IMG/VR virus record: IMGVR_UViG_3300020165_000007
Coordinates: 186,001-250,000 of that record
Reading direction: 5' to 3' (one strand)
DNA length: 64,000 bases
A model generated the notes under the pieces. It searched no databases. It saw only the letters and a list, made by a program, of their open reading frames with translations, and was not told the DNA's origin. Below, one piece after another: positions 1,976 to 41,936 of this stretch (the stretch's first letter is position 1; each line of letters begins with the position of its first letter). The translations under genes were made by a program, and so were the position numbers.

Positions 1976-2423
1976 TTTCTACTCTATTAATAATTTGTGG
2001 ATTCTGTTTAATGGTTTGTATAGTAATTAAGTCCTTAATCTTAGTCGTAGACCAGTTATGTGAACGAGTAGTATAGATAACGTCAATAGGTAAGTGGTCA
2101 CCTGTATATCTTTTACCGATATAATCATCACCCAATATACGAATGTCAGGCTTATAAAAGGTCATCAATTCGAGGAGTTCTTCTTCCGTCTGATAGCAAA
2201 CCACCTCATCGACATATTTTATCGACATAAGGGTCTTATATCGTTCATACAAGGGTATTACAGGTTTATACTTAGTGTTCCTTGTTTCAGAGGGGTCACT
2301 TTGCAAAAATACCATAAAGTAATCACAATGTTCTTTAGCCGTTTCAAATGTATAAATGTAACCAGGGTGTAATAAATCAAAATTACCCGCAGTAAATCCT
2401 ATTTTTCCTTTTTTACTATCCAT
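1968..2423 (-). CDS. Cytidylyltransferase family protein (TagD/RfaE-II-like)
   Basis: GFTAGNFDLLHPGY (HxGH-type), KPDIRILGDDY, RSHNWSTT motifs. Confidence 0.85.
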   Translation of the reverse strand: MDSKKGKIGFTAGNFDLLHPGYIYTFETAKEHCDYFMVFLQSDPSETRNTKYKPVIPLYERYKTLMSIKYVDEVVCYQTEEELLELMTFYKPDIRILGDDYIGKRYTGDHLPIDVIYTTRSHNWSTTKIKDLITIQTIKQNPQIINRVENE

Positions 2424-2459
2424 GTGGTAATAGTATTACATATAAAATATATTGTAAAT

Positions 2460-2488
2460 AAAAAACCCCTCAACAATAAGGGGTTTTT
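2460..2488. terminator. Intrinsic terminator (bidirectional)
   Basis: AAAAAACCCCT-N7-AGGGGTTTTT. Confidence 0.7.
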
Positions 2489-2511
2489 GTAATCACAAAA
2501 GGAATTATTGA

Positions 2512-2688
2512 TTATCCACAGCAGGACATATCACAACAATTTCCTTCACACTTTGTTTCATCACAGTGGTCCATTTGACAACATGTTGTCTCCTTAACAC
2601 ACTCTGACTCGGATTCACAACAGGACATTTCTGATGACGTTGCACAACTAAACAATCCGACAGATAACAGAATAAATAAATGTTTCAT
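2512..2688 (-). CDS. Cys-rich metallothionein-like lipoprotein, copy 1 (58 aa)
   Basis: Manual translation MKHLFILLSVGLFSCATSSEMSCCESESECVKETTCCQMDHCDETKCEGNCCDMSCCG; lipobox LFSC; paralog at 7051-7227. Confidence 0.85.
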   Translation of the reverse strand: MKHLFILLSVGLFSCATSSEMSCCESESECVKETTCCQMDHCDETKCEGNCCDMSCCG

Positions 2689-3233
2689 GTTGTTTTGTTA
2701 TTATTATTACAGAATCCCTTAACAGGTACACCTGAACTGGATATAAAATTATCGATAGCTTTAGCCAATTCATCACCCCTATCGTAAGAGACTCTTAATT
2801 CTTCGAGGACACCGTCTTTTAATTCCTTAGACATCTCAAAACTTCTACCCTTATTTACTGCTCTAATTATATCATCGATGAGGTTCACCAACTTACTATC
2901 TAATTTATCTAACAATAAACCGATAGCTTCGTCAGGTGTGTTTACCTTTTCACCCACCTGAACTTTTTTAATTACATTTTTAATTGCAAATACACACTGA
3001 GCAACAGCACCTTCGACGTTATCACAAAGACTGTCAGAATCTGCAAGACCATTTAAAGTTTTAAACAAGCTCATCATAACATTTTTATACTTAGTGACCA
3101 ACTCAAGGGCAGTAATTTTAGGGGGTCTGTTCTGAACTTTATCCTTTACCTTATCAATAATATTTTCATCGACTGAATACATGTTAAGAATGTCGTGTTT
3201 TTCAGACTCAGATATAATAATTCTTTTACTCAT
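2685..3233 (-). CDS. Hypothetical protein with N-terminal leader
   Basis: MSKRIIISESEKHDILNMYSVDE leader; TATTTAT upstream (3248-3254). Confidence 0.75.
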   Translation of the reverse strand: MSKRIIISESEKHDILNMYSVDENIIDKVKDKVQNRPPKITALELVTKYKNVMMSLFKTLNGLADSDSLCDNVEGAVAQCVFAIKNVIKKVQVGEKVNTPDEAIGLLLDKLDSKLVNLIDDIIRAVNKGRSFEMSKELKDGVLEELRVSYDRGDELAKAIDNFISSSGVPVKGFCNNNNKTT

Positions 3234-3452
3234 AATATTCTTTTATTATAAATATCACAAGAAAGAAAAAAGTTAACCCACATTATCTTAAAGAGTCACT
3301 ACAGGAGTTCCCATAAGAAGTCGAAAAAAACACGTCCGAAAGGACGAAAAAAAATTTTTCGGTAATCCGGCATCAGAGAGATTTACAAACAAATAAGCAA
3401 AATAAAACCCCCAAACCGAAGAAAGGGGGTTAAATTTACAAACGTAATAGGA

Positions 3453-3818
3453 TTACGCTCTACGGAGATAAGTTTCATCACGAAGGATATAACCAATAAA
3501 GGCAAATGAACCCAACATAATAGGTGCCATAACTCCTGAACCCCCCATCATAGAGAGATGCATGACCACAGCTCCCGTCATAATGGAACCCAAAAGAACG
3601 GAACCATATAATGAAGTACGGGGGTATACAAACAAAATAACACCAAGAACTTCAAGAATACCCACCATAGTAAGGTAAGGGGTTAAGTTCATAAATGTAA
3701 AATTGTTTATCATCTCTTCTGTACCGAAGATTTTAGAGAATCCTCCCATTCCCAACATAACAGCAACAAACGCCGTAAATAACCAACCTAAGTTGGCAAG
3801 TGTTAAATACTTTTTCAT
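3453..3818 (-). CDS. DoxX family membrane protein
   Basis: 4 TM helices, GILEVLG and GAVVMH motifs. Confidence 0.8.
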   Translation of the reverse strand: MKKYLTLANLGWLFTAFVAVMLGMGGFSKIFGTEEMINNFTFMNLTPYLTMVGILEVLGVILFVYPRTSLYGSVLLGSIMTGAVVMHLSMMGGSGVMAPIMLGSFAFIGYILRDETYLRRA

Positions 3819-3890
3819 AATATATAATTTTAGTTTTATATAATATATAAAATGATAAAATACTTGTAAATAGATGATATATGAAGAAAC

Positions 3891-4046
3891 TTAACGATTA
3901 CCGTTAATAAATTCCAAATCCTCGATTTCCTTAATAATACTGTCGACACTGAAATTAACACCGTTAGTCGTAGGTATCTGAAAATGAGTGGTACCCCTTT
4001 CCTTGAGAATATATAACATGTCCTTAACTTGTGAGAGATTATTCAT
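3891..4046 (-). CDS. Small hypothetical protein (51 aa)
   Basis: Manual translation MNNLSQVKDMLYILKERG...; TATTTAT just upstream. Confidence 0.5.
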   Translation of the reverse strand: MNNLSQVKDMLYILKERGTTHFQIPTTNGVNFSVDSIIKEIEDLEFINGNR

Positions 4047-4064
4047 ACCAATAAATATATTAAA

Positions 4065-4613
4065 TTATTTAATACTAACAGTGATTTCTAAAGGAATCGT
4101 TACCTTCTTCTCATAAGGGGGACATACTTCCGTGTCGACGTCCCCGTCATAATCTATATACGTAATCTCTACTTTACCCCCGTCAAGAAGAACCTGAGAT
4201 ATAGGGGGGTAAATTCTTTTATAGTTATTTGTTGATGACCCTATGAAACCATATTCTGTAATTTGATTATTGTTTTGTGAATCACCTACTAATAGACATC
4301 CTGATGTATCCTCAGCAGTATTTCCAATATGAATTAAAATATATTCAAATCCTGGTACATCCCTAACCCATAACATCCCCTTATTAAAGTCTGTACCAAA
4401 TCGTTCATTATAATCTTGGTTCATACCTCCTTCTGTTCTAAGAGTTACGTTGTATGTTCCTGATGGTACCCGTGTCTTACCTGATACCTTTTCATCTCTA
4501 TACTCATCTTCCAAAGTATAAGATAGAAACTTACGTTTACCGTCAGTTACATCAAATAAAATCCCATTAGTTGATGTCCCCTCACTTGATATTCTTAATA
4601 CTTCTAGTTTCAT
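4065..4613 (-). CDS. DUF5675 family protein (L,D-transpeptidase-like fold; possible cell-wall hydrolase)
   Basis: YTLED...T(R)VPSGTY...ILIHIGNTAEDTSGCLLVG signature. Confidence 0.8.
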   Translation of the reverse strand: MKLEVLRISSEGTSTNGILFDVTDGKRKFLSYTLEDEYRDEKVSGKTRVPSGTYNVTLRTEGGMNQDYNERFGTDFNKGMLWVRDVPGFEYILIHIGNTAEDTSGCLLVGDSQNNNQITEYGFIGSSTNNYKRIYPPISQVLLDGGKVEITYIDYDGDVDTEVCPPYEKKVTIPLEITVSIK

Positions 4614-4620
4614 ATATTAA

Positions 4621-4974
4621 TCATTTAATAAAAGGTACCATATCTATATACCTAATATTAGCGTTTAATTTCTTATCGTTAAAAAATGTAGAATGTATTT
4701 CCGTTAACTTAGCAAAAATATCCCCCTTCACTCCCATACTGCCTATTCCTCTCATTCCTTTACAATCTTCTTTAACACTAACTTTAATTTTAGGGGTGAT
4801 ATATTCGTTAAATTTATCATTCATTCTTCTCTCAAAGTCATCTTTGGGTGGGTGTCGAACTAACGATTCACTACCAGAAACAAATCCATCAAACTCAATC
4901 TTATCAATACATTTATGTACTGAAGGTAACATGTACTTTACGAGTAAACTATATTTTTCTTCAAAGTCTTCCAT
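4621..4974 (-). CDS. Hypothetical protein
   Basis: ORF; start moved to MEDFEEK, directly after TATTTAT motif. Confidence 0.6.
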   Translation of the reverse strand: MEDFEEKYSLLVKYMLPSVHKCIDKIEFDGFVSGSESLVRHPPKDDFERRMNDKFNEYITPKIKVSVKEDCKGMRGIGSMGVKGDIFAKLTEIHSTFFNDKKLNANIRYIDMVPFIK

Positions 4975-5029
4975 ATAAATAAATATCATTATGTTTGGAT
5001 AATTGTACAGTTATCACTATATTTATAGT

Positions 5030-5539
5030 ATGAAACAATTACTAAGTATTTACCTTTCTTTTTTTTCGTTGTGTGTATATTCACAAACAGATAGTTTAGT
5101 TTATTACAGACCTAACTACTACACACAGTTTTTGTTGGATTCTTTAAATGTACCATTTATTCCATTGGATTTAAGAAATGATACATCATATAATAACAAT
5201 GAATATATTAGTGAGTTTAATAACTATTTCGGTAATGACTTAGTTTATCTCCCTAATCAAAATACTGATTACTATGATTTTTTAGAATCTGACCTTGAGG
5301 ACCTTTTTGGTAATTTAAAGTCTTTATTAAAACCCGATGGTGTAATTGGTGAAAGATTTATTGAGGACGGAGATAATTTATATCGTTTAATTGAATACTT
5401 TGATATTGTAGATAATGAAAATATTAGGGTCTATTACTTTAAAACAACTCTATATAAATTAAGTACTAATGGTGGGTGGGTCTCAATTATTGACCCTCCT
5501 TCGGATAAGTTACCAAAATTTAACAAAACTTACATGTAA
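5030..5539 (+). CDS. Secreted hypothetical protein
   Basis: Sec signal MKQLLSIYLSFFSLCVYS|Q (Bacteroidota-type Gln +1); TATTTAT at 5020-5026. Confidence 0.65.
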   Translation: MKQLLSIYLSFFSLCVYSQTDSLVYYRPNYYTQFLLDSLNVPFIPLDLRNDTSYNNNEYISEFNNYFGNDLVYLPNQNTDYYDFLESDLEDLFGNLKSLLKPDGVIGERFIEDGDNLYRLIEYFDIVDNENIRVYYFKTTLYKLSTNGGWVSIIDPPSDKLPKFNKTYM

Positions 5540-5540
5540 T

Positions 5541-5566
5541 AAAAAAGGGTCAACTGACCCTTTTTT
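5541..5566. terminator. Bidirectional terminator between convergent genes
   Basis: AAAAAAGGGTCA-AC-TGACCCTTTTTT perfect inverted repeat. Confidence 0.8.
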
Positions 5567-5585
5567 ATTTAATATATGTAATGAC

Positions 5586-6203
5586 TTATAAAGAATTTGA
5601 TAATTCACCAAATCTCTCACTGATTTTATTACCAAACAATTTAATAACTTCTTCTTTATTTGATATAGTACTTAATGCGTTTTTAAAACTATCAAATGCG
5701 CTTTTCTTATTATGTTCAAAATTAATTCTAAACCATGAAGGATTATCTGGATATGTCTCAACATTAAGGCCATTCATGTCTTTTCTAATAACTACATATA
5801 CTCCTCCATAAGTATCAGATTCAGAATCTGATATATAAGGATAACCGTCCTTCGAATAAAGAGGTTTATATACATTCCATTTTAGATTATGTATATCTCC
5901 TGCAATATCCTTTTCTTCATTATTTTCACCATAATTTTTTAATTTAAAAATGTATCCGTTAAAAAAAAACGGAGTTTCCTTGTTTTGACTAGCAACCGAT
6001 AAGAAATTATTAAAGTTTCCATTATCTAATCCAAAGTCGGCATCGAACTTACTATATTTAATGTTTTCATATAGGTCAACCTGACCCAATTGTTTGTTGA
6101 CCATTTGCTGGAACTTCTCGTTCATCAGCTTCATACCACCTGAATGTTGTTCCCTTATAGAGTTTTTTTCTTCCTCCGATATGTTATTTAGTAAATGTTT
6201 CAT
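5586..6203 (-). CDS. Hypothetical protein with N-terminal leader
   Basis: MKHLLNNISEEEKNSIREQH...LMNE; TATTTAT 6221-6227. Confidence 0.75.
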   Translation of the reverse strand: MKHLLNNISEEEKNSIREQHSGGMKLMNEKFQQMVNKQLGQVDLYENIKYSKFDADFGLDNGNFNNFLSVASQNKETPFFFNGYIFKLKNYGENNEEKDIAGDIHNLKWNVYKPLYSKDGYPYISDSESDTYGGVYVVIRKDMNGLNVETYPDNPSWFRINFEHNKKSAFDSFKNALSTISNKEEVIKLFGNKISERFGELSNSL

Positions 6204-6253
6204 ATTAATATCATTTTATTATAAATACTCAGTAACATTAAAAAATTACAATT

Positions 6254-6439
6254 TTATATACCTAATTCAGTTACCCTACCCATAATATACGATTTCTTCT
6301 TTTCCAATAAGGTAATTTGTTTAGTTTCACTTTCGTCTAAATCAAATTTATTCATTTTAATTGAATTAATTTGATTCTCCAATCGATGGTATTCATTCAA
6401 ATAGTCATCATATAACTTAGCCTTTGCATTATCATTCAT
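6254..6439 (-). CDS. Small coiled-coil hypothetical protein
   Basis: ORF in co-oriented run. Confidence 0.6.
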   Translation of the reverse strand: MNDNAKAKLYDDYLNEYHRLENQINSIKMNKFDLDESETKQITLLEKKKSYIMGRVTELGI

Positions 6440-6480
6440 ACTTAAAATTTAACAAATTAAATAATATAGTATATGGTAAA

Positions 6481-6687
6481 TTACTTTTTACTGTATTTTA
6501 CTTTTTTCTTATCATTTGGGAATCTACTGAAATTACCCATACCGTCGATATCCATTTCATCAGCCTCATTGGATAAACTCTTAAATTCTTTTTCTTGTTC
6601 TTTATGAGAACGATTAATCATTGTTAATAACCCCAACATATATAGGATGAAAATAATTGACCCGACAGTAAACATAATAATTTGCAT
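6481..6687 (-). CDS. Small membrane protein
   Basis: N-terminal TM; C-terminal DxDGMGNFSRF. Confidence 0.6.
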   Translation of the reverse strand: MQIIMFTVGSIIFILYMLGLLTMINRSHKEQEKEFKSLSNEADEMDIDGMGNFSRFPNDKKKVKYSKK

Positions 6688-6692
6688 GATAA

Positions 6693-6893
6693 TCAGTTTT
6701 TGTTTTTGTAGTAATCATTTCGACGTTGACGAATAGTTGTCGACATACTCAAGATTGAAGGAACCCAAATCCCAACAAAGATACCCTCAAGTTGATATCC
6801 CATAAACCATAGTGTAACCGAATACAGGAATGAGATGAAAGCAAGAATAACGGGATAATAAATTTCCCAAAATGTAATTAGTTTGTTTTTCAT
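6693..6893 (-). CDS. Small two-TM membrane protein
   Basis: FLYSVTLWF...GIFVGIWVPSIL; ATG at 6893 preferred. Confidence 0.65.
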   Translation of the reverse strand: MKNKLITFWEIYYPVILAFISFLYSVTLWFMGYQLEGIFVGIWVPSILSMSTTIRQRRNDYYKNKN

Positions 6894-6997
6894 ACCAAAA
6901 AGATAATAATAACTTTCCAATTTCTCAAGTTTTTTCTGGAAATTTTCAGAGAGGTTTTTACCCCTTTTTCAGAAAGAGGGTCTTGTTTCTATATAAT

Positions 6998-7027
6998 AAA
7001 AAACCCCTCCGAGTTGGAGAGGTTTTT
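6998..7027 (-). terminator. Terminator hairpin, third member of repeated CCCCTCCG..TGGAGAGG family
   Basis: AAAAAACCCCTCCGAGTTGGAGAGGTTTTT. Confidence 0.7.
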
Positions 7028-7050
7028 AAAATCAGATAAGGATTGTTGGA

Positions 7051-7227
7051 TTATCCACAGCAGGACACATCACAACAATTACCTTCACACTTGTCGGTAT
7101 TACAGTGGTCCATTTCACAACATACAACATCTTTTGTACAATCTGTTTTAGATTCACAACAAGCCATCTCTGTTGATGCCGAACAACTGAATAATCCTAA
7201 CGTTAAGATTACTAATAAATTTTTCAT
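7051..7227 (-). CDS. Cys-rich metallothionein-like lipoprotein, copy 2 (58 aa)
   Basis: MKNLLVILTLGLFSCSASTEMACCESKTDCTKDVVCCEMDHCNTDKCEGNCCDVSCCG; identical Cys spacing to copy 1. Confidence 0.85.
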   Translation of the reverse strand: MKNLLVILTLGLFSCSASTEMACCESKTDCTKDVVCCEMDHCNTDKCEGNCCDVSCCG

Positions 7228-7264
7228 GATAATTAATTTATAATTGTTTATACCAATATGTATG

Positions 7265-7324
7265 CCAATTTTCCCAAAAATTTTAATCAATAAAAAACCC
7301 CTCCGTATTGGAGAGGTTCTTATT
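7265..7324. repeat. ~60-bp direct repeat copy A (contains terminator hairpin)
   Basis: CCAATTTT.CCAAAAATTTTAATCAATAAAAAACCCCTCCGTATTGGAGAGG.TCTTATT, near-identical to 8006-8066. Confidence 0.9.
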
Positions 7325-7335
7325 TTTTATTTTGG

Positions 7336-7980
7336 TCATAGAGGTGGTTTTGTCCCTGTTGGTTTTGGTACTGTACCTCCAATATGCGCAATCGAGTCTA
7401 AATAACGTAATGCTTTAGACAACTCTTCAACCCTATACTTTAAATCAGGAGGAGTCATACTCATTAGTTTTCCCTTTGAAGTTCCACTATTCCTAACTTC
7501 TTCTACAAAATCTGGTAGTCTAGATTTTTTAACACGGTTTATAAAATCTTTGAATTCAGTTTTACTTAAATACAACATGTCTTTTAACCATTTTAAGGGA
7601 AGATAGTCACCATCAATTTTTTGAGTTTGTATTAAATCACTTACGATATCAAAAGGTTCTTCGTATTGGTCTTCATATCCAGTACCTTTGACAGTACTAT
7701 TCCAAAAACCACCTATGTTATTCAATATACTACGATTTGTTTCATTAGTATTCATAACTTGATTCACCATTTCCTTATTACGAATATCAAGTAACTCTTC
7801 CCTAGTTTTATTTAAGATAGGTAAAACTTCAGATAATGATTGTTGAACAGTTTTCATTTTTGATAGTTGGTCTAATTGGTCACCCACTTTAAACTCATCA
7901 TTAGATTGTTCATCAATCAAACCATACATCTCTTGTATGTTTCTTTTTTCTTCTTCGGATAATAATATTTGTCGTCCCAT
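7336..7980 (-). CDS. Hypothetical protein with N-terminal leader, flanked by 60-bp direct repeats
   Basis: MGRQILLSEEEKRNIQEMYGLIDEQ; TATTTAT 7998-8004. Confidence 0.75.
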   Translation of the reverse strand: MGRQILLSEEEKRNIQEMYGLIDEQSNDEFKVGDQLDQLSKMKTVQQSLSEVLPILNKTREELLDIRNKEMVNQVMNTNETNRSILNNIGGFWNSTVKGTGYEDQYEEPFDIVSDLIQTQKIDGDYLPLKWLKDMLYLSKTEFKDFINRVKKSRLPDFVEEVRNSGTSKGKLMSMTPPDLKYRVEELSKALRYLDSIAHIGGTVPKPTGTKPPL

Positions 7981-8005
7981 AGTATTATTGTTTACCAATA
8001 AATAT

Positions 8006-8066
8006 CCAATTTTTCCAAAAAATTTTAATCAATAAAAAACCCCTCCGTATTGGAGAGGGTCTTATT
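8006..8066. repeat. ~60-bp direct repeat copy B
   Basis: Near-identical to 7265-7324; overlaps the last codons of the 8025-8660 gene. Confidence 0.9.
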
Positions 8067-8660
8067 CCAACCTTCATACGCAATGGCTGTAGTACGTTCA
8101 AGTACTTCTGCAAAGTATTCTTCATTATCGTTAATTAAATCAACCATTACTGCCCTTTCATCTTCCCACCAATTATCAGTCTTTAAATTATTTCTCATCC
8201 ACTCGTTTTCAGACAGTGTTATTAAATAACGAGTTAAGTGTAATGATTCATGAGCCAAAATTCTGTTAATATATCCTGGTGATGATGCTCTTTGCACATT
8301 TATAAATTCAAATAGTTGGTCCCTATAAAAATTGGTTAAACCACCAATATATGCATCATCCATTTCCGTCCTTCCTTCAGATTCCATTTTGGTTATGTGT
8401 TCCTCAGCACCTTCTCTAGTTAGACCTGCAATTTCATTAGTACCAAAAGCATCAAAAATAGATAAACTACTATCCCCAAAAATTAAATGATAAGGTTGTA
8501 ATTTAATGTCCTTTTTATCTATAACATCAAATACACCAACGGTAACTAATTCATGTAGTAAAACACCTGTTTTTTTGGGTAAAGAAATGGACTTACTGAT
8601 AGATTTTTGTTCTCTATCTTCCAACTCTTCTTTTAATACTTTTCGGATTAATTCTTTCAT
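8025..8660 (-). CDS. HExxH (zincin-like) putative metallopeptidase with N-terminal leader
   Basis: ILAHESLHLT...NEEYFAE; leader MKELIRKVLKEE; TATTTAT 8665-8671. Confidence 0.65.
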   Translation of the reverse strand: MKELIRKVLKEELEDREQKSISKSISLPKKTGVLLHELVTVGVFDVIDKKDIKLQPYHLIFGDSSLSIFDAFGTNEIAGLTREGAEEHITKMESEGRTEMDDAYIGGLTNFYRDQLFEFINVQRASSPGYINRILAHESLHLTRYLITLSENEWMRNNLKTDNWWEDERAVMVDLINDNEEYFAEVLERTTAIAYEGWNKTLSNTEGFFID

Positions 8661-11906: not shown

Positions 11907-12482
11907 ATGATTTTTACTGAGTTATCACACGCACATATCACCTTTGTAATAGGTTTACCAGGTAGTGGTAAAAGTTACCTATTAAATTACCTAAAAGAAA
12001 ACCCTTTTATCGAACCTGTCGTTTATGATGATTGGTTAATAGTATACGAAAATGATTGTGGTAATGAAAATTTTAATTGTGACAGTAGATATCCTGAATT
12101 AATAGAAAACTTGAATAATAAGATACCTTGTATTATTTCTTCTATTAAGTTTTTGGAGCCTGAATTTTTAAATAGTTCCATAACCACATTAATTGAAGAA
12201 ATTAATGATTTAAAAATAGAATATTTATACTTTGATAATGACATAGAATCATGTAAGTTTAATGTGAAATGTAGAGATATTGAGTTGGGTGGTTATTGGA
12301 AACCTAATAATGAAGGAATTTTATGGTATTATGGTACTATATATAATAATAAACCTTTATATCTATCTGAGTTATCTAATATTGAGAATCTGTCATCCAC
12401 TTATGAAATTCCTACAAAATATACTCCGATAAAGATTGAACGTAATAAGAATATAACGAAATTACCTTTTGGATATGAATAA
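11907..12482 (+). CDS. P-loop NTPase/kinase (AAA_33-like)
   Basis: VIGLPGSGKS Walker A, VYDD. Confidence 0.65.
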   Translation: MIFTELSHAHITFVIGLPGSGKSYLLNYLKENPFIEPVVYDDWLIVYENDCGNENFNCDSRYPELIENLNNKIPCIISSIKFLEPEFLNSSITTLIEEINDLKIEYLYFDNDIESCKFNVKCRDIELGGYWKPNNEGILWYYGTIYNNKPLYLSELSNIENLSSTYEIPTKYTPIKIERNKNITKLPFGYE

Positions 12483-12846
12483 AATAAAATCTCTAACTTT
12501 ATTAACTTTTCTTTTAATTTGTAATCTATCTTATTCCCAATATTGGTTGGATAGTTTAGATATAAAACCTATTTATGTCCCTAACGCGATTACCTTAGAT
12601 AATGATAACATTAATGATGGGTGGAGAGCTGAAAGTTGTGTAGAGTGGGATGATTATGAGGTTATGATATTTAACTGTTGGGGTGAATGTATTTGGTATA
12701 GTAAAGATATAGAGGAGTGGTGGATTGGTGATAAGGTTAAGAGTGGTACCCACTTTTCAAAAGACGGGTTATATACATATAAAATACAGGCTCGTAAAGG
12801 TTTTGAAACCACGGTTAAGGAAGGAGTAATTTATGTAATAAGATAA
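12475..12846 (+). CDS. Signal peptide plus stand-alone T9SS type-B C-terminal sorting domain (CHU_C/gliding-motility CTD)
   Basis: YVPNAITLDNDNINDGW...IFNCWGECIW...WWIG...GLYTYKI...G.I..IR. Confidence 0.8.
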   Translation: MNKIKSLTLLTFLLICNLSYSQYWLDSLDIKPIYVPNAITLDNDNINDGWRAESCVEWDDYEVMIFNCWGECIWYSKDIEEWWIGDKVKSGTHFSKDGLYTYKIQARKGFETTVKEGVIYVIR

Positions 12847-39240: not shown

Positions 39241-39516
39241 TAGGAATTCTTTGACCTTGTGAATTGCTTCATTTAAGTCTTTGAACGATAGGTCTGGAGC
39301 TAACAATTGTATATCAGGTTTTTCCCCTTCTTTAATCTCTACTAATGTTAGAGCGGGTAGATATTCATTTTTAGTTACATCAACAAATTGTTTATATTCT
39401 TTTTCATGTTCATCGACATTTCTTTCAATATACTCTAAATTTTCTTCTTTAAACATTTTTTTTAAAGAATAACAGTGAGGACACCCTTCCATACTATATA
39501 AGATTACTGTTTTCAT
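39235..39516 (-). CDS. Glutaredoxin-like protein
   Basis: YSMEGCPHC. Confidence 0.85.
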   Translation of the reverse strand: MKTVILYSMEGCPHCYSLKKMFKEENLEYIERNVDEHEKEYKQFVDVTKNEYLPALTLVEIKEGEKPDIQLLAPDLSFKDLNEAIHKVKEFLL

Positions 39517-39833
39517 TATAATACGTTTTTAACCATTTCTAATATTTGATTTTCACTAACTAAACCAACTTTATTACCCACATTTTCTCCTCCACTAAAA
39601 ATTTTAATATAGGGAATAGAACGTACCCCTAGTTGAGTAGCCATTTGTTGGTCTTCTTCAATGTTAAATTTATAAACTTTCATTTCACTTCCTTCTTCCT
39701 CCAATTTTTTAGCAACACTTTCGATAATCGGACTTAACATTCTGCAAGGTCCGCACCAATCCGCGTACAAATCTACTATAAATTTTTCACCTGAATTTAT
39801 TTTTTCTTGCAATTCCTGTGCATTTATTTTCAT
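39516..39833 (-). CDS. trxA: Thioredoxin
   Basis: DLYADWCGPCR, GVRSIP. Confidence 0.93.
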   Translation of the reverse strand: MKINAQELQEKINSGEKFIVDLYADWCGPCRMLSPIIESVAKKLEEEGSEMKVYKFNIEEDQQMATQLGVRSIPYIKIFSGGENVGNKVGLVSENQILEMVKNVL

Positions 39834-41279: not shown

Positions 41280-41936
41280 TTATTTAACCGGAATTGGAGT
41301 ACCAACGGGATATGGTGACCCTTCTTTCGCAGCAGTGACAGAAGTCATACCTGAATCTACAGGAATAGCAAATCTTAATGGAATTGCCGCCTCATTTAAA
41401 GGACCATAACATTTGGATAATATTATACCATTGTCAAGTGTGTCTATTATGTCACATGGCATTGCGAACATATTACTCATACTGGTACTTGGTGAATTTG
41501 TGTCAACAATAAACTTACGATTAGTTGGTGGTAACCATTCCCATCCGTTAGTTTCAGGATTAAATTGTGGTACTGTATCACTTGATGTAAAGAACCAAAA
41601 GAATGACCATGTTGTTCCGTCTGTCCCATCAGGAGTTTGTTGATTTTCTTTTACATTAAACTCTCCCCAAGTTTCACTTTTACCTTCCATAGCCAAGTTG
41701 GAAATTGATAGTCCGTTCATAACAGGACAAATTGCACAACCTTCGTCGAACTCAGTTCCTTGTACAGTTATTTTTTTACCTGTAGGTACAGCACCTGACG
41801 CCCCACAGAATGAGAAAGAACCTTCATGTAGTACAACCACTTCTTCAGGTTCAGGAGCGCATGTATCCACTTCCGTTTGTTGTCCACAACTTAGTAGTAA
41901 GAAGGATGACAACAATGTTAATAATGTTTTTTTCAT
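41280..41936 (-). CDS. Putative lipoprotein (Cys-containing)
   Basis: Lipobox LLSC; several Cys in mature part. Confidence 0.7.
   Translation of the reverse strand: MKKTLLTLLSSFLLLSCGQQTEVDTCAPEPEEVVVLHEGSFSFCGASGAVPTGKKITVQGTEFDEGCAICPVMNGLSISNLAMEGKSETWGEFNVKENQQTPDGTDGTTWSFFWFFTSSDTVPQFNPETNGWEWLPPTNRKFIVDTNSPSTSMSNMFAMPCDIIDTLDNGIILSKCYGPLNEAAIPLRFAIPVDSGMTSVTAAKEGSPYPVGTPIPVK

Follow-up and report, generated by a model that had tools for sequence, protein, structure and literature searches.

Two cysteine-rich mini-lipoprotein genes of a large marine phage and their candidate role at the host envelope

Two genes and an orphan lipoprotein family

The stretch of DNA considered here, termed the window, comprises 64,000 nucleotides (bases 186,001-250,000) of the IMG/VR virus record IMGVR_UViG_3300020165_000007, a linear phage sequence of 270,383 bp with 33% G+C and an estimated completeness of 88%. 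The window carries two short genes for cysteine-rich lipoproteins, designated copy 1 ("type A", prolipoprotein P0001) and copy 2 ("type B", P0002), whose start codons are 4,539 nt apart (Table 1). An earlier note, made from the bare sequence, had described two genes some 4.5 kb apart, each encoding a peptide of 58 residues with an LFSC lipobox, an identical Cys spacing, and an acidic mature part of 43 residues with 11 Cys and one His; the open reading frame (ORF) list, the translations, and the computed composition bear this description out.

The two peptides align end to end without a gap, with 36 of 58 residues identical (62%; BLASTP, E = 1e-28). Both open with M-K-x-L, continue with a hydrophobic stretch, and reach G-L-F-S-C with the Cys at position 15; further Cys residues are found at positions 23, 24, 30, 36, 37, 42, 47, 51, 52, 56, and 57, with the His at 41, which gives the common spacing C-x7-CC-x5-C-x5-CC-x4-C-x4-C-x3-CC-x3-CC-G. 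The mature part (residues 16-58; 26% Cys) contains 9-10 Asp/Glu, 2-3 Lys as its basic residues, at most three aliphatic residues, no Phe, Trp, or Tyr, and no Pro anywhere, with a pI of about 4.1. Copies 1 and 2 are the only ORFs with more than 10% Cys in the 270-kb genome, which holds no other member of the family.

Bacterial lipoprotein precursors carry a positively charged N-terminal residue, an uncharged hydrophobic stretch, and a lipobox of the form [LVI..][ASTVI..][GAS]-C, with the Cys located within residues 15-35. Both copies display this arrangement through K2, uncharged hydrophobic residues 4-13, and G-L-F-S-C15, and an L-F-[SG]-C lipobox is present in all family members. A regular-expression scan of the genome for lipoboxes matched 7 of 302 ORFs. 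The precursors fit the sequence rules for bacterial lipoproteins, and lipidation is predicted for both.

Relatives proved scarce. The profile search that the earlier note had proposed recovered three clusters of the family among 1.84 billion representative proteins; word searches returned four 90% clusters for copy 1, and the most divergent member retrieves itself alone. (The 90% cluster of the 52-residue P0007 also lists P0009, a glycoside-hydrolase-like protein of 794 residues, an evident clustering artefact of the protein collection.) No family member turned up when the genomes of 185,579 prokaryote species were scanned in six frames for the pattern, and neither megablast nor tblastn found a match among GenBank phages (50,697 phage records for tblastn). 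Scans of the family against Pfam, NCBIfam, PHROGs, and PADLOC gave no meaningful match; sub-threshold matches to LSR, a VirB7 signal peptide, and keratin B2 were dismissed as effects of composition or of the signal peptide. A profile search of the PDB was empty save for one chance match (E = 1.8), and a feature search of the ESM Atlas gave best scores of 0.85, to unnamed clusters and below the useful range. Literature searches on periplasmic or lipoprotein metallothioneins, phage metallothioneins, and this family likewise returned nothing relevant. Every genomic context fetched was phage-like, with dense small ORFs almost devoid of Pfam matches and several contigs of 36-241 kb, and all family contigs are marine or estuarine. 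By their sequences and distribution, copies 1 and 2 are judged to be paralogues in a family of mini-lipoproteins that is restricted to phages and had not been described before. The family is a sequence orphan that probably works like a known kind, the small phage envelope lipoprotein; both its chemistry and its host group are new.

Pairwise comparison of eight distinct coding sequences of the family for nonsynonymous (dN) and synonymous (dS) substitutions gave dN/dS ratios of 0.06-0.37, with dS ranging from 0.7 to saturated. Between copies 1 and 2, dS is 0.82 and dN 0.24 (omega = 0.29); the corresponding values between copy 2 and its orthologue P0004 are 0.18 and 0.029, and the orthologue of copy 1, P0003, is 84% identical. 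Across a 16-member alignment, 10 of the 11 mature Cys are invariant, compared with 5 of the 32 other mature positions (Fisher p = 1.5e-5). Those five are M39, H41, N50, D53, and S55, so the earlier suggestion of selection on the Cys pattern holds insofar as purifying selection is strong, but it is not confined to Cys. The block from Cys36 to the C-terminus hardly changes across the family, leaving the C-terminal half nearly fixed, and K2, L4, L8, L12, F13, and C15 are invariant in the signal peptide. Because patterned relatives exist in other phage contigs, dN/dS is low, and Cys invariance goes far beyond chance, copies 1 and 2 are real genes under purifying selection, and that they represent a real phage lipoprotein family is very likely.

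DNA of this phage is present in runs from 11 marine or estuarine studies. Assembled contigs of four metatranscriptome libraries (two studies) cover copy 1 with its upstream ORF, including contigs across the junction between the two (X15 2307-3442, X16 2516-2984, and X18 2590-3211), and copy 2 has depth in two of those four libraries; it counts against this evidence of transcription that it consists of assembled contigs rather than reads, so that DNA carry-over is possible and neither level nor strand can be read from it.

The host was assigned from CHU_C, the C-terminal sorting domain of type IX secretion, a system that is to our knowledge confined to Bacteroidota. The phage genome encodes two such domains, at 12574-12837 of the window (ORF 12469-12846, plus strand) and at G000:140373-140636 within an ORF of 1002 residues; a relative, the contig L009, carries another CHU_C-bearing ORF (2335-2700). 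No close bacterial homologue of the CHU_C protein was found when one was sought. Because the domains occur in both the phage and its relative, the predicted host is a Bacteroidota bacterium, which the L-F-S/G-C style of lipobox also fits. Judging from these domains, the phage apparently routes cargo of its own through the type IX secretion system of its host.

In Bacteroidota, experimentally defined motifs directly after the lipidated Cys, namely K-(D/E)2, SDDDD, and SDDFE, export lipoproteins to the cell surface (PMC5080379). The family was therefore inspected for a signal of this kind (K-(D/E)2, Q-A-(D/E)2, SDDDD, or SDDFE), in which two or more neighboring residues at positions +3 to +5 are acidic. 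No such signal was found: positions +2 to +6 read ATSSE and SASTE in the two window copies and STSAD, TTSSE, and GSLKS in other family members, the lipidated Cys being followed by Ser/Thr/Ala and by one acidic residue, at +5 or +6. The lipid anchor is therefore predicted to face the periplasm.

Genomic setting

Table 1. Positions of the two lipoprotein genes, their parts, and the elements next to them in the window
Feature	Position	Strand	Basis or remark
Copy 1 (type A) coding sequence, prolipoprotein P0001	2512..2688	-	58 codons + stop; ORF list, translation
Signal peptide and lipobox of copy 1, residues 1-15, ending L-F-S-C	2644..2688	-	translation; PROSITE-type rule
Cys-rich core of copy 1, residues 23-58	2515..2622	-	CC-x5-C-x5-CC-x4-C-x4-C-x3-CC-x3-CC-G; invariant M39, H41, N50, D53, S55
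Terminator (hairpin + T-run), 30 nt past copy 1 stop	2466..2482	-	terminator scan, sequence
ORF of 182 residues, stop overlapping copy 1 start (ATGA)	2685..3233	-	TATTTAT motif at ~3248-3254
Copy 2 (type B) coding sequence, prolipoprotein P0002	7051..7227	-	58 codons + stop
Signal peptide and lipobox of copy 2, residues 1-15	7183..7227	-	translation, family alignment
Cys-rich core of copy 2, residues 23-58	7054..7161	-	translation, family alignment
Terminator directly after copy 2, 12-bp stem	6999..7027	-	terminator scan
Intergenic leader/promoter region of copy 2, 65 nt	7228..7292	-	upstream alignment; degenerate common upstream motif
Near-identical terminator, ending the preceding gene (7336-7998)	7293..7321	-	terminator scan

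The two genes are organized differently. At least 60 of the roughly 300 genes have a promoter-like motif, (A/G)TATTTAT(A/T) with an A-rich stretch after it, 17-24 nt before their start codons; throughout the genome, the motif is enriched 8.9-fold upstream of genes. Examples precede the 182-residue ORF next to copy 1 and the genes at 1064-1756, 5586-6203, and 7336-7980. Copy 1 is probably co-transcribed with the 182-residue ORF and read from the motif of that ORF. Copy 2, on the other hand, is predicted to be isolated as its own transcription unit by the terminator that ends the preceding gene; a sigma-70-like match lies upstream of it at 7268-7240, and the common motif, exact in the type-B gene of L009, takes a degenerate form here. 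Within the 270-kb genome, the G+C-rich terminator hairpin is limited to three sites, each behind one of three successive genes (7004-7022, 7298-7316, and 8040-8058, minus strand), which suggests insertion or duplication of a cassette through recombination at the terminator.

Comparison with relatives revealed considerable turnover. Types A and B represent two lineages of old standing. L009 carries both, 3.7 kb apart, and is 97-98% identical to a further contig, L015, on both flanks of the type-B site; at the site itself, L009 has a type-B cassette of 280 bp (7938-8218), and L015 has unrelated genes spanning 1.46 kb instead. Copy 2 forms a cassette of promoter, gene, and terminator, a unit that near-identical phages may have or lack. 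Type A shows shifting company: P0003 occupies the same position in other phage contigs as copy 1 does here, upstream of a cytidylyltransferase gene, and the upstream neighbor elsewhere is a lipoprotein of about 209 residues (seven loci), a 63-residue membrane protein with two helices (L023 and L024), or other genes. Copy number varies as well, with two copies in this phage and in L009 and one in an 82%-complete relative of 241 kb; no long relative contig seen is without a copy. Lastly, P0011, P0012, and P0013, from metagenome contigs of 2.4-3.0 kb of the Joint Genome Institute, bear three different out-of-frame deletions in the 3' end of type A, where Cys codons are repetitive. Each loses the last Cys and reads into a different tail, and these may be natural null alleles or assembly artefacts. 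Because of the type-B swap, the shifting type-A neighbors, the varying copy number, and the frameshifted alleles, the Cys-rich lipoprotein gene behaves as an accessory, exchangeable gene.

The larger lipoprotein directly upstream of type A in the seven other loci contains Cys, is 209-218 residues long, and is separated from type A by 30-40 nt. Its genes (window 41280-41936, minus strand; L006:5705-6334; L015:9340-9969; and five more) have no family match. In the window the 218-residue version lies 38 kb from the type-A gene, so the adjacency is not conserved, and a complex prediction for the mature peptide with the mature 218-residue protein returned "no answer" (score 0.00), which weighs neither way.

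Several otherwise unrelated proteins share an N-terminal leader of about 23 residues, which reads M-x-K-R-I-I-L-S-E-x-E-K-x-x-I in this phage and M-K-K-I-V-R-L-T-E-S-D-L-x-x-I-V-K-R-V-I in relatives. In the phage it is encoded on the minus strand by the genes at 1064-1756, 2685-3233, 5586-6203, and 7336-7980, and also at G000:184811-185487 and 110015-110269; among relatives it is found at L023:6260-7887, L024:647-3352, and L026:2351-2743. Genes with the leader cluster around those for Cys-rich lipoproteins in three diverged phage lineages and match nothing in Pfam or PHROGs. By analogy with the capsid-targeting sequence of phage T4, the leader may be a signal for targeting or processing. One carrier, the 230-residue protein at 1064-1756 (relative at L005:7020-7769), combines it with a PG_binding_1 domain (6.8e-14) and a C-terminal region with 11 Cys of its own, and has no recognizable catalytic domain.

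Two further neighbors recur near the Cys-rich gene in related phages: a DoxX_2/MauE-like membrane protein (3453-3818, minus strand; Pfam 6.3e-10 and 1.4e-4) with four helices and not a single Cys, and a DUF5675 protein (4065-4613, minus strand; 3e-23) whose H-x-G...S-G-C motif is reminiscent of YkuD-type peptidoglycan enzymes.

The neighborhood bears on a possible function in lysis, in which the peptides would act as outer-membrane spanins of the Rz1 type, or as some other lysis component, by linking to an inner-membrane partner and disrupting the outer membrane. They would resemble the o-spanin of phage lambda as tiny outer-membrane lipoproteins of phages with functionally important Cys residues, and the odd number of Cys would allow intermolecular disulfides of the kind known there. 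The presence of at least one copy in every sufficiently long relative contig, the overlap of the copy 1 start with the upstream stop, and the surrounding genes are all compatible with such a function; the latter include small membrane proteins (6481-6687 and 6693-6920), the DUF5675 and peptidoglycan-binding proteins, and, in L023 and L024, the two-helix membrane protein directly upstream. However, proteins of the Rz1 type are Pro-rich, carry one Cys, and invariably come with an i-spanin, whose gene adjoins, overlaps, or embeds their own and encodes an N-terminal transmembrane helix with a long periplasmic coiled coil; the window family has no Pro, 11 Cys, and no membrane-anchored partner adjoining, the ORFs upstream of the two copies (2685-3233 and 7336-7980) being free of transmembrane segments (maximal 19-residue hydropathy 0.95 and 0.37). 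Moreover, neighbors vary between lineages, type B is dispensable between near-identical phages, a knotted core of 36 residues is too short for helping to span the periplasm, and better lysis candidates exist about 20 kb away (G000:162-171 kb, locus L027). A part in lysis is thus very unlikely. The candidates at that other locus comprise a signal-anchored protein with a borderline SLT transglycosylase domain (G000:162302-162790; 21.4 bits against a cut-off of 21.3), a protein of 112 residues with an N-terminal transmembrane helix and a coiled coil (G000:167879-168217), and a lipoprotein of 74 residues followed by a membrane protein of 45 residues (G000:170397-170765).

Disulfide staples or a metal cluster

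The mature peptides, called metallothionein-like in the earlier note, have no aromatic residues and no hydrophobic core. The likeness stands for composition, low mass with some 20-30% Cys and no aromatic residues being the operational mark of a metallothionein; it fails for sequence, since no relation to any metallothionein or other known family was detected. Of the motifs that build metal-thiolate clusters, four CC doublets are present, while CxC and CxxC, typical of metallothioneins and zinc sites, are absent, all other Cys gaps being 3-5 residues. The accompanying remark that known bacterial metallothioneins, such as SmtA/BmtA and MymT, are cytoplasmic agrees with established knowledge. Those proteins are likewise small and Cys-rich, with few or no aromatic residues and a conserved His, but they have no signal peptide, are built on CxC/CxxC motifs, and gave no profile match. 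The window family, in contrast, is predicted to be lipid-anchored and exported through the general secretory (Sec) pathway, is strongly acidic, and uses only CC doublets and single Cys 3-5 residues apart.

If the peptides nonetheless bind metal, they would constitute a lipid-anchored extracytoplasmic metal-thiolate protein in which the 11 thiols, His41, Met39, and carboxylates wrap Zn, Cu(I), or Cd, buffering toxic copper or hoarding zinc for the infected cell. Such chemistry would suit the Cys-rich, acidic, aliphatic-poor mature part and its doublets, as well as the placement of the invariant Met39 and His41 in a CC-x-M-D/E-H-C block, to which divergent lineages add two extra His. Eleven is also the number of Cys ligands in the four-metal cluster of the vertebrate metallothionein alpha-domain. 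Loss of a single Cys is tolerated in the P0008 lineage, AlphaFold finds no ligand-free structure, and the estuarine and coastal origin of samples containing the phage makes metal stress plausible. Yet no metallothionein model in Pfam or NCBIfam matched even at E ≤ 10, and none was found in the PDB; the characteristic motifs are lacking; a thiol-rich chain exported unfolded by Sec into an oxidizing periplasm normally ends as disulfides; a search of the phage genome for HMA-type or metal-transport genes found none; and the benefit for a lytic phage is hard to see. Metal binding by known periplasmic proteins relies mostly on Met and His, and the only thiolate store known to us to leave the cytoplasm, the methanotroph copper storage protein Csp1, is exported folded via the twin-arginine translocation (Tat) pathway. 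Csp1 is comparable to the window family in being extracytoplasmic, in its many Cys thiolates (some as CxxxC), and in a soft-metal storage function. It is nevertheless a four-helix bundle of about 120 residues, whereas the window family offers a chain of 43 residues with no predicted helices, Sec/signal peptidase II export, and no sequence match. A metal-thiolate function is accordingly judged unlikely, and its full form, a first virus-encoded "periplasmic metallothionein" holding a small Zn/Cu(I)/Cd cluster in infected marine Bacteroidota, slightly more so.

Export of the unfolded chain by Sec into a disulfide-making compartment favors a disulfide knot, the second option of the earlier note, over metal chelation. 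Peptides of this design are known: STa, the heat-stable enterotoxin of Escherichia coli, and the conotoxins and knottins are Sec-exported, carry CC doublets, and hold their fold by disulfides only, although they share no homology with the window family and are secreted, soluble toxins with an even number of Cys rather than lipid-anchored, phage-encoded peptides with 11. One report on STa contains the statement that it binds Zn and Fe (PMC7113584). The P0008 lineage, seen on two independent contigs, lacks only Cys24, the one mature Cys that varies in the family alignment; because this loss turns 11 Cys into an even 10, Cys24 is the residue likely to be unpaired.

A number of observations weigh against a disulfide knot. 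An odd count of 11 free Cys is atypical of fully oxidized exported proteins, and the invariant Met and His next to Cys, with Asp/Glu in abundance, have the look of a metal site. AlphaFold2 produced no confident fold with a full-length alignment of 16 sequences (predicted local distance difference test [pLDDT] 51.1) and no secondary structure with a mature-domain alignment of 8 sequences (pLDDT 54.7), values of 51-55 that are equally expected of a metal-dependent fold. Furthermore, the phage genome was searched for DsbA-like and VKOR proteins, and no periplasmic Dsb-like helper was found. It does encode a thioredoxin (39516-39833, minus strand; WCGPC, 1.3e-23) that has no signal peptide, adjoins a glutaredoxin-like ORF, and presumably belongs to nucleotide metabolism. 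The DoxX_2/MauE-like neighbor was considered as a phage-supplied disulfide oxidase and ruled out: the disulfide-forming activity of MauE depends on a CXC motif (bioRxiv 10.64898/2026.03.05.709764), and a protein with zero Cys has neither a periplasmic CXC active site nor a CxxC one of the DsbB/VKOR kind.

The same genes speak to a third possibility, in which the peptides would be sacrificial redox decoys whose tethered thiols absorb oxidants or compete for periplasmic thiol-disulfide oxidoreductases of the host and thereby upset how envelope proteins of the host fold. A decoy would be in keeping with 11 thiols among 43 residues, a periplasmic location, an odd Cys count that leaves a reactive thiol, and the recurrence of the DoxX_2/MauE-like gene, here 0.8 kb away. 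A bulk thiol sink, however, does not call for exact, invariant spacing and invariant non-Cys residues, which point to a defined fold; besides the Cys-less DoxX_2 protein, no periplasmic thioredoxin-fold or VKOR gene was found in the phage, whose sole thioredoxin has no signal for export. Such a decoy is highly improbable.

On balance, peptides stapled by disulfides rather than clustered around metal appear somewhat the likelier outcome, with metal taking a clearly smaller share and mixed or other chemistry the remainder; the sequence itself cannot decide.

A possible role at the host envelope

The best-supported comparison is Llp of phage T5, a periplasmic lipoprotein of 61 residues with one intramolecular disulfide that blocks the TonB-dependent transporter FhuA from inside; small periplasmic phage lipoproteins like Llp are said to be common (PMC9586334). 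Llp and Cor are, as is seen or predicted for the window peptides, phage-encoded, very small, lipid-anchored, periplasm-facing, and disulfide-stabilized, and they are infection-time accessory genes that act on a host outer-membrane protein (PMC9586334). The analogy rests on size, lipid anchor, predicted orientation, phage-only spread, presence/absence polymorphism, and divergence of the paralogues, and not on homology.

The following course can be envisaged. After Sec export, Lgt and LspA of the host would lipidate the precursor and cut it at Cys15, giving a lipopeptide of 44 residues that remains in a leaflet facing the periplasm, probably the inner one of the outer membrane. A Ser/Thr tether of 7-8 residues would carry the acidic core of 36 residues, and, as this core has no hydrophobic interior of its own, the 11 thiols would have to hold the chain together. 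In the oxidizing periplasm of an aerobic marine host, about five disulfides and one spare thiol, probably that of Cys24, would produce a rigid knob on which Met39, His41, Asn50, Asp53, and Ser55 may form a binding surface or one small metal site. As an infection-time accessory factor, the knob would bind a host envelope protein from the periplasmic side; the likeliest outcome would be superinfection exclusion through Llp-style jamming of a TonB-dependent transporter, and two diverged paralogues could serve two targets. Receptor blocking of this sort, raised in the earlier note, would fit the cassette-like presence and absence of the gene.

Several differences count against this proposal. Neither the sequence nor the fold of the family resembles Llp or Cor (by Pfam, PHROG, and tblastn comparison for the former). 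Llp combines one disulfide with a normal hydrophobic core; the window family lacks such a core and has 11 Cys. Llp and Cor act in Enterobacteria, whereas the predicted host here belongs to Bacteroidota. In T5, llp adjoins the gene for the receptor-binding protein pb5; in the window, no receptor-binding or tail-fiber gene is recognizable near either copy, and the large ORFs scanned match only PHROGs of unknown function. In addition, the C-terminal half of the peptides is near-frozen across saturated dS, whereas exclusion proteins usually evolve fast. Taking both sides together, we tentatively prefer, by analogy, an accessory lipoprotein that faces the periplasm, is stapled by disulfides, and alters the host envelope as T5 Llp does, while a role specifically in exclusion or in binding an envelope protein is possible but more doubtful.

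Whichever chemistry applies, a sequence-orphan family in which a quarter of the mature chain is cysteine has come to light in large, widespread marine phages of predicted Bacteroidota hosts, and a peptide of 43 residues is within reach of chemical synthesis. Should the peptides hold metal, they would be exported metallothioneins of a new class and would bring to the marine cycling of trace metals a new kind of viral auxiliary function, one by which a phage directly manipulates the trace-metal handling of its host in the sea. Action on the envelope from within the periplasm by small phage lipoproteins, such as T5 Llp and Cor, is an emerging theme, with nearly all known cases in coliphages. The surfaces of Bacteroidota are dominated by TonB-dependent transporters. 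If the family instead forms disulfide-held knobs that jam a transporter or secretion component of the host, it would provide a very small, stable binder scaffold and would extend lipoprotein-mediated exclusion to Bacteroidota.

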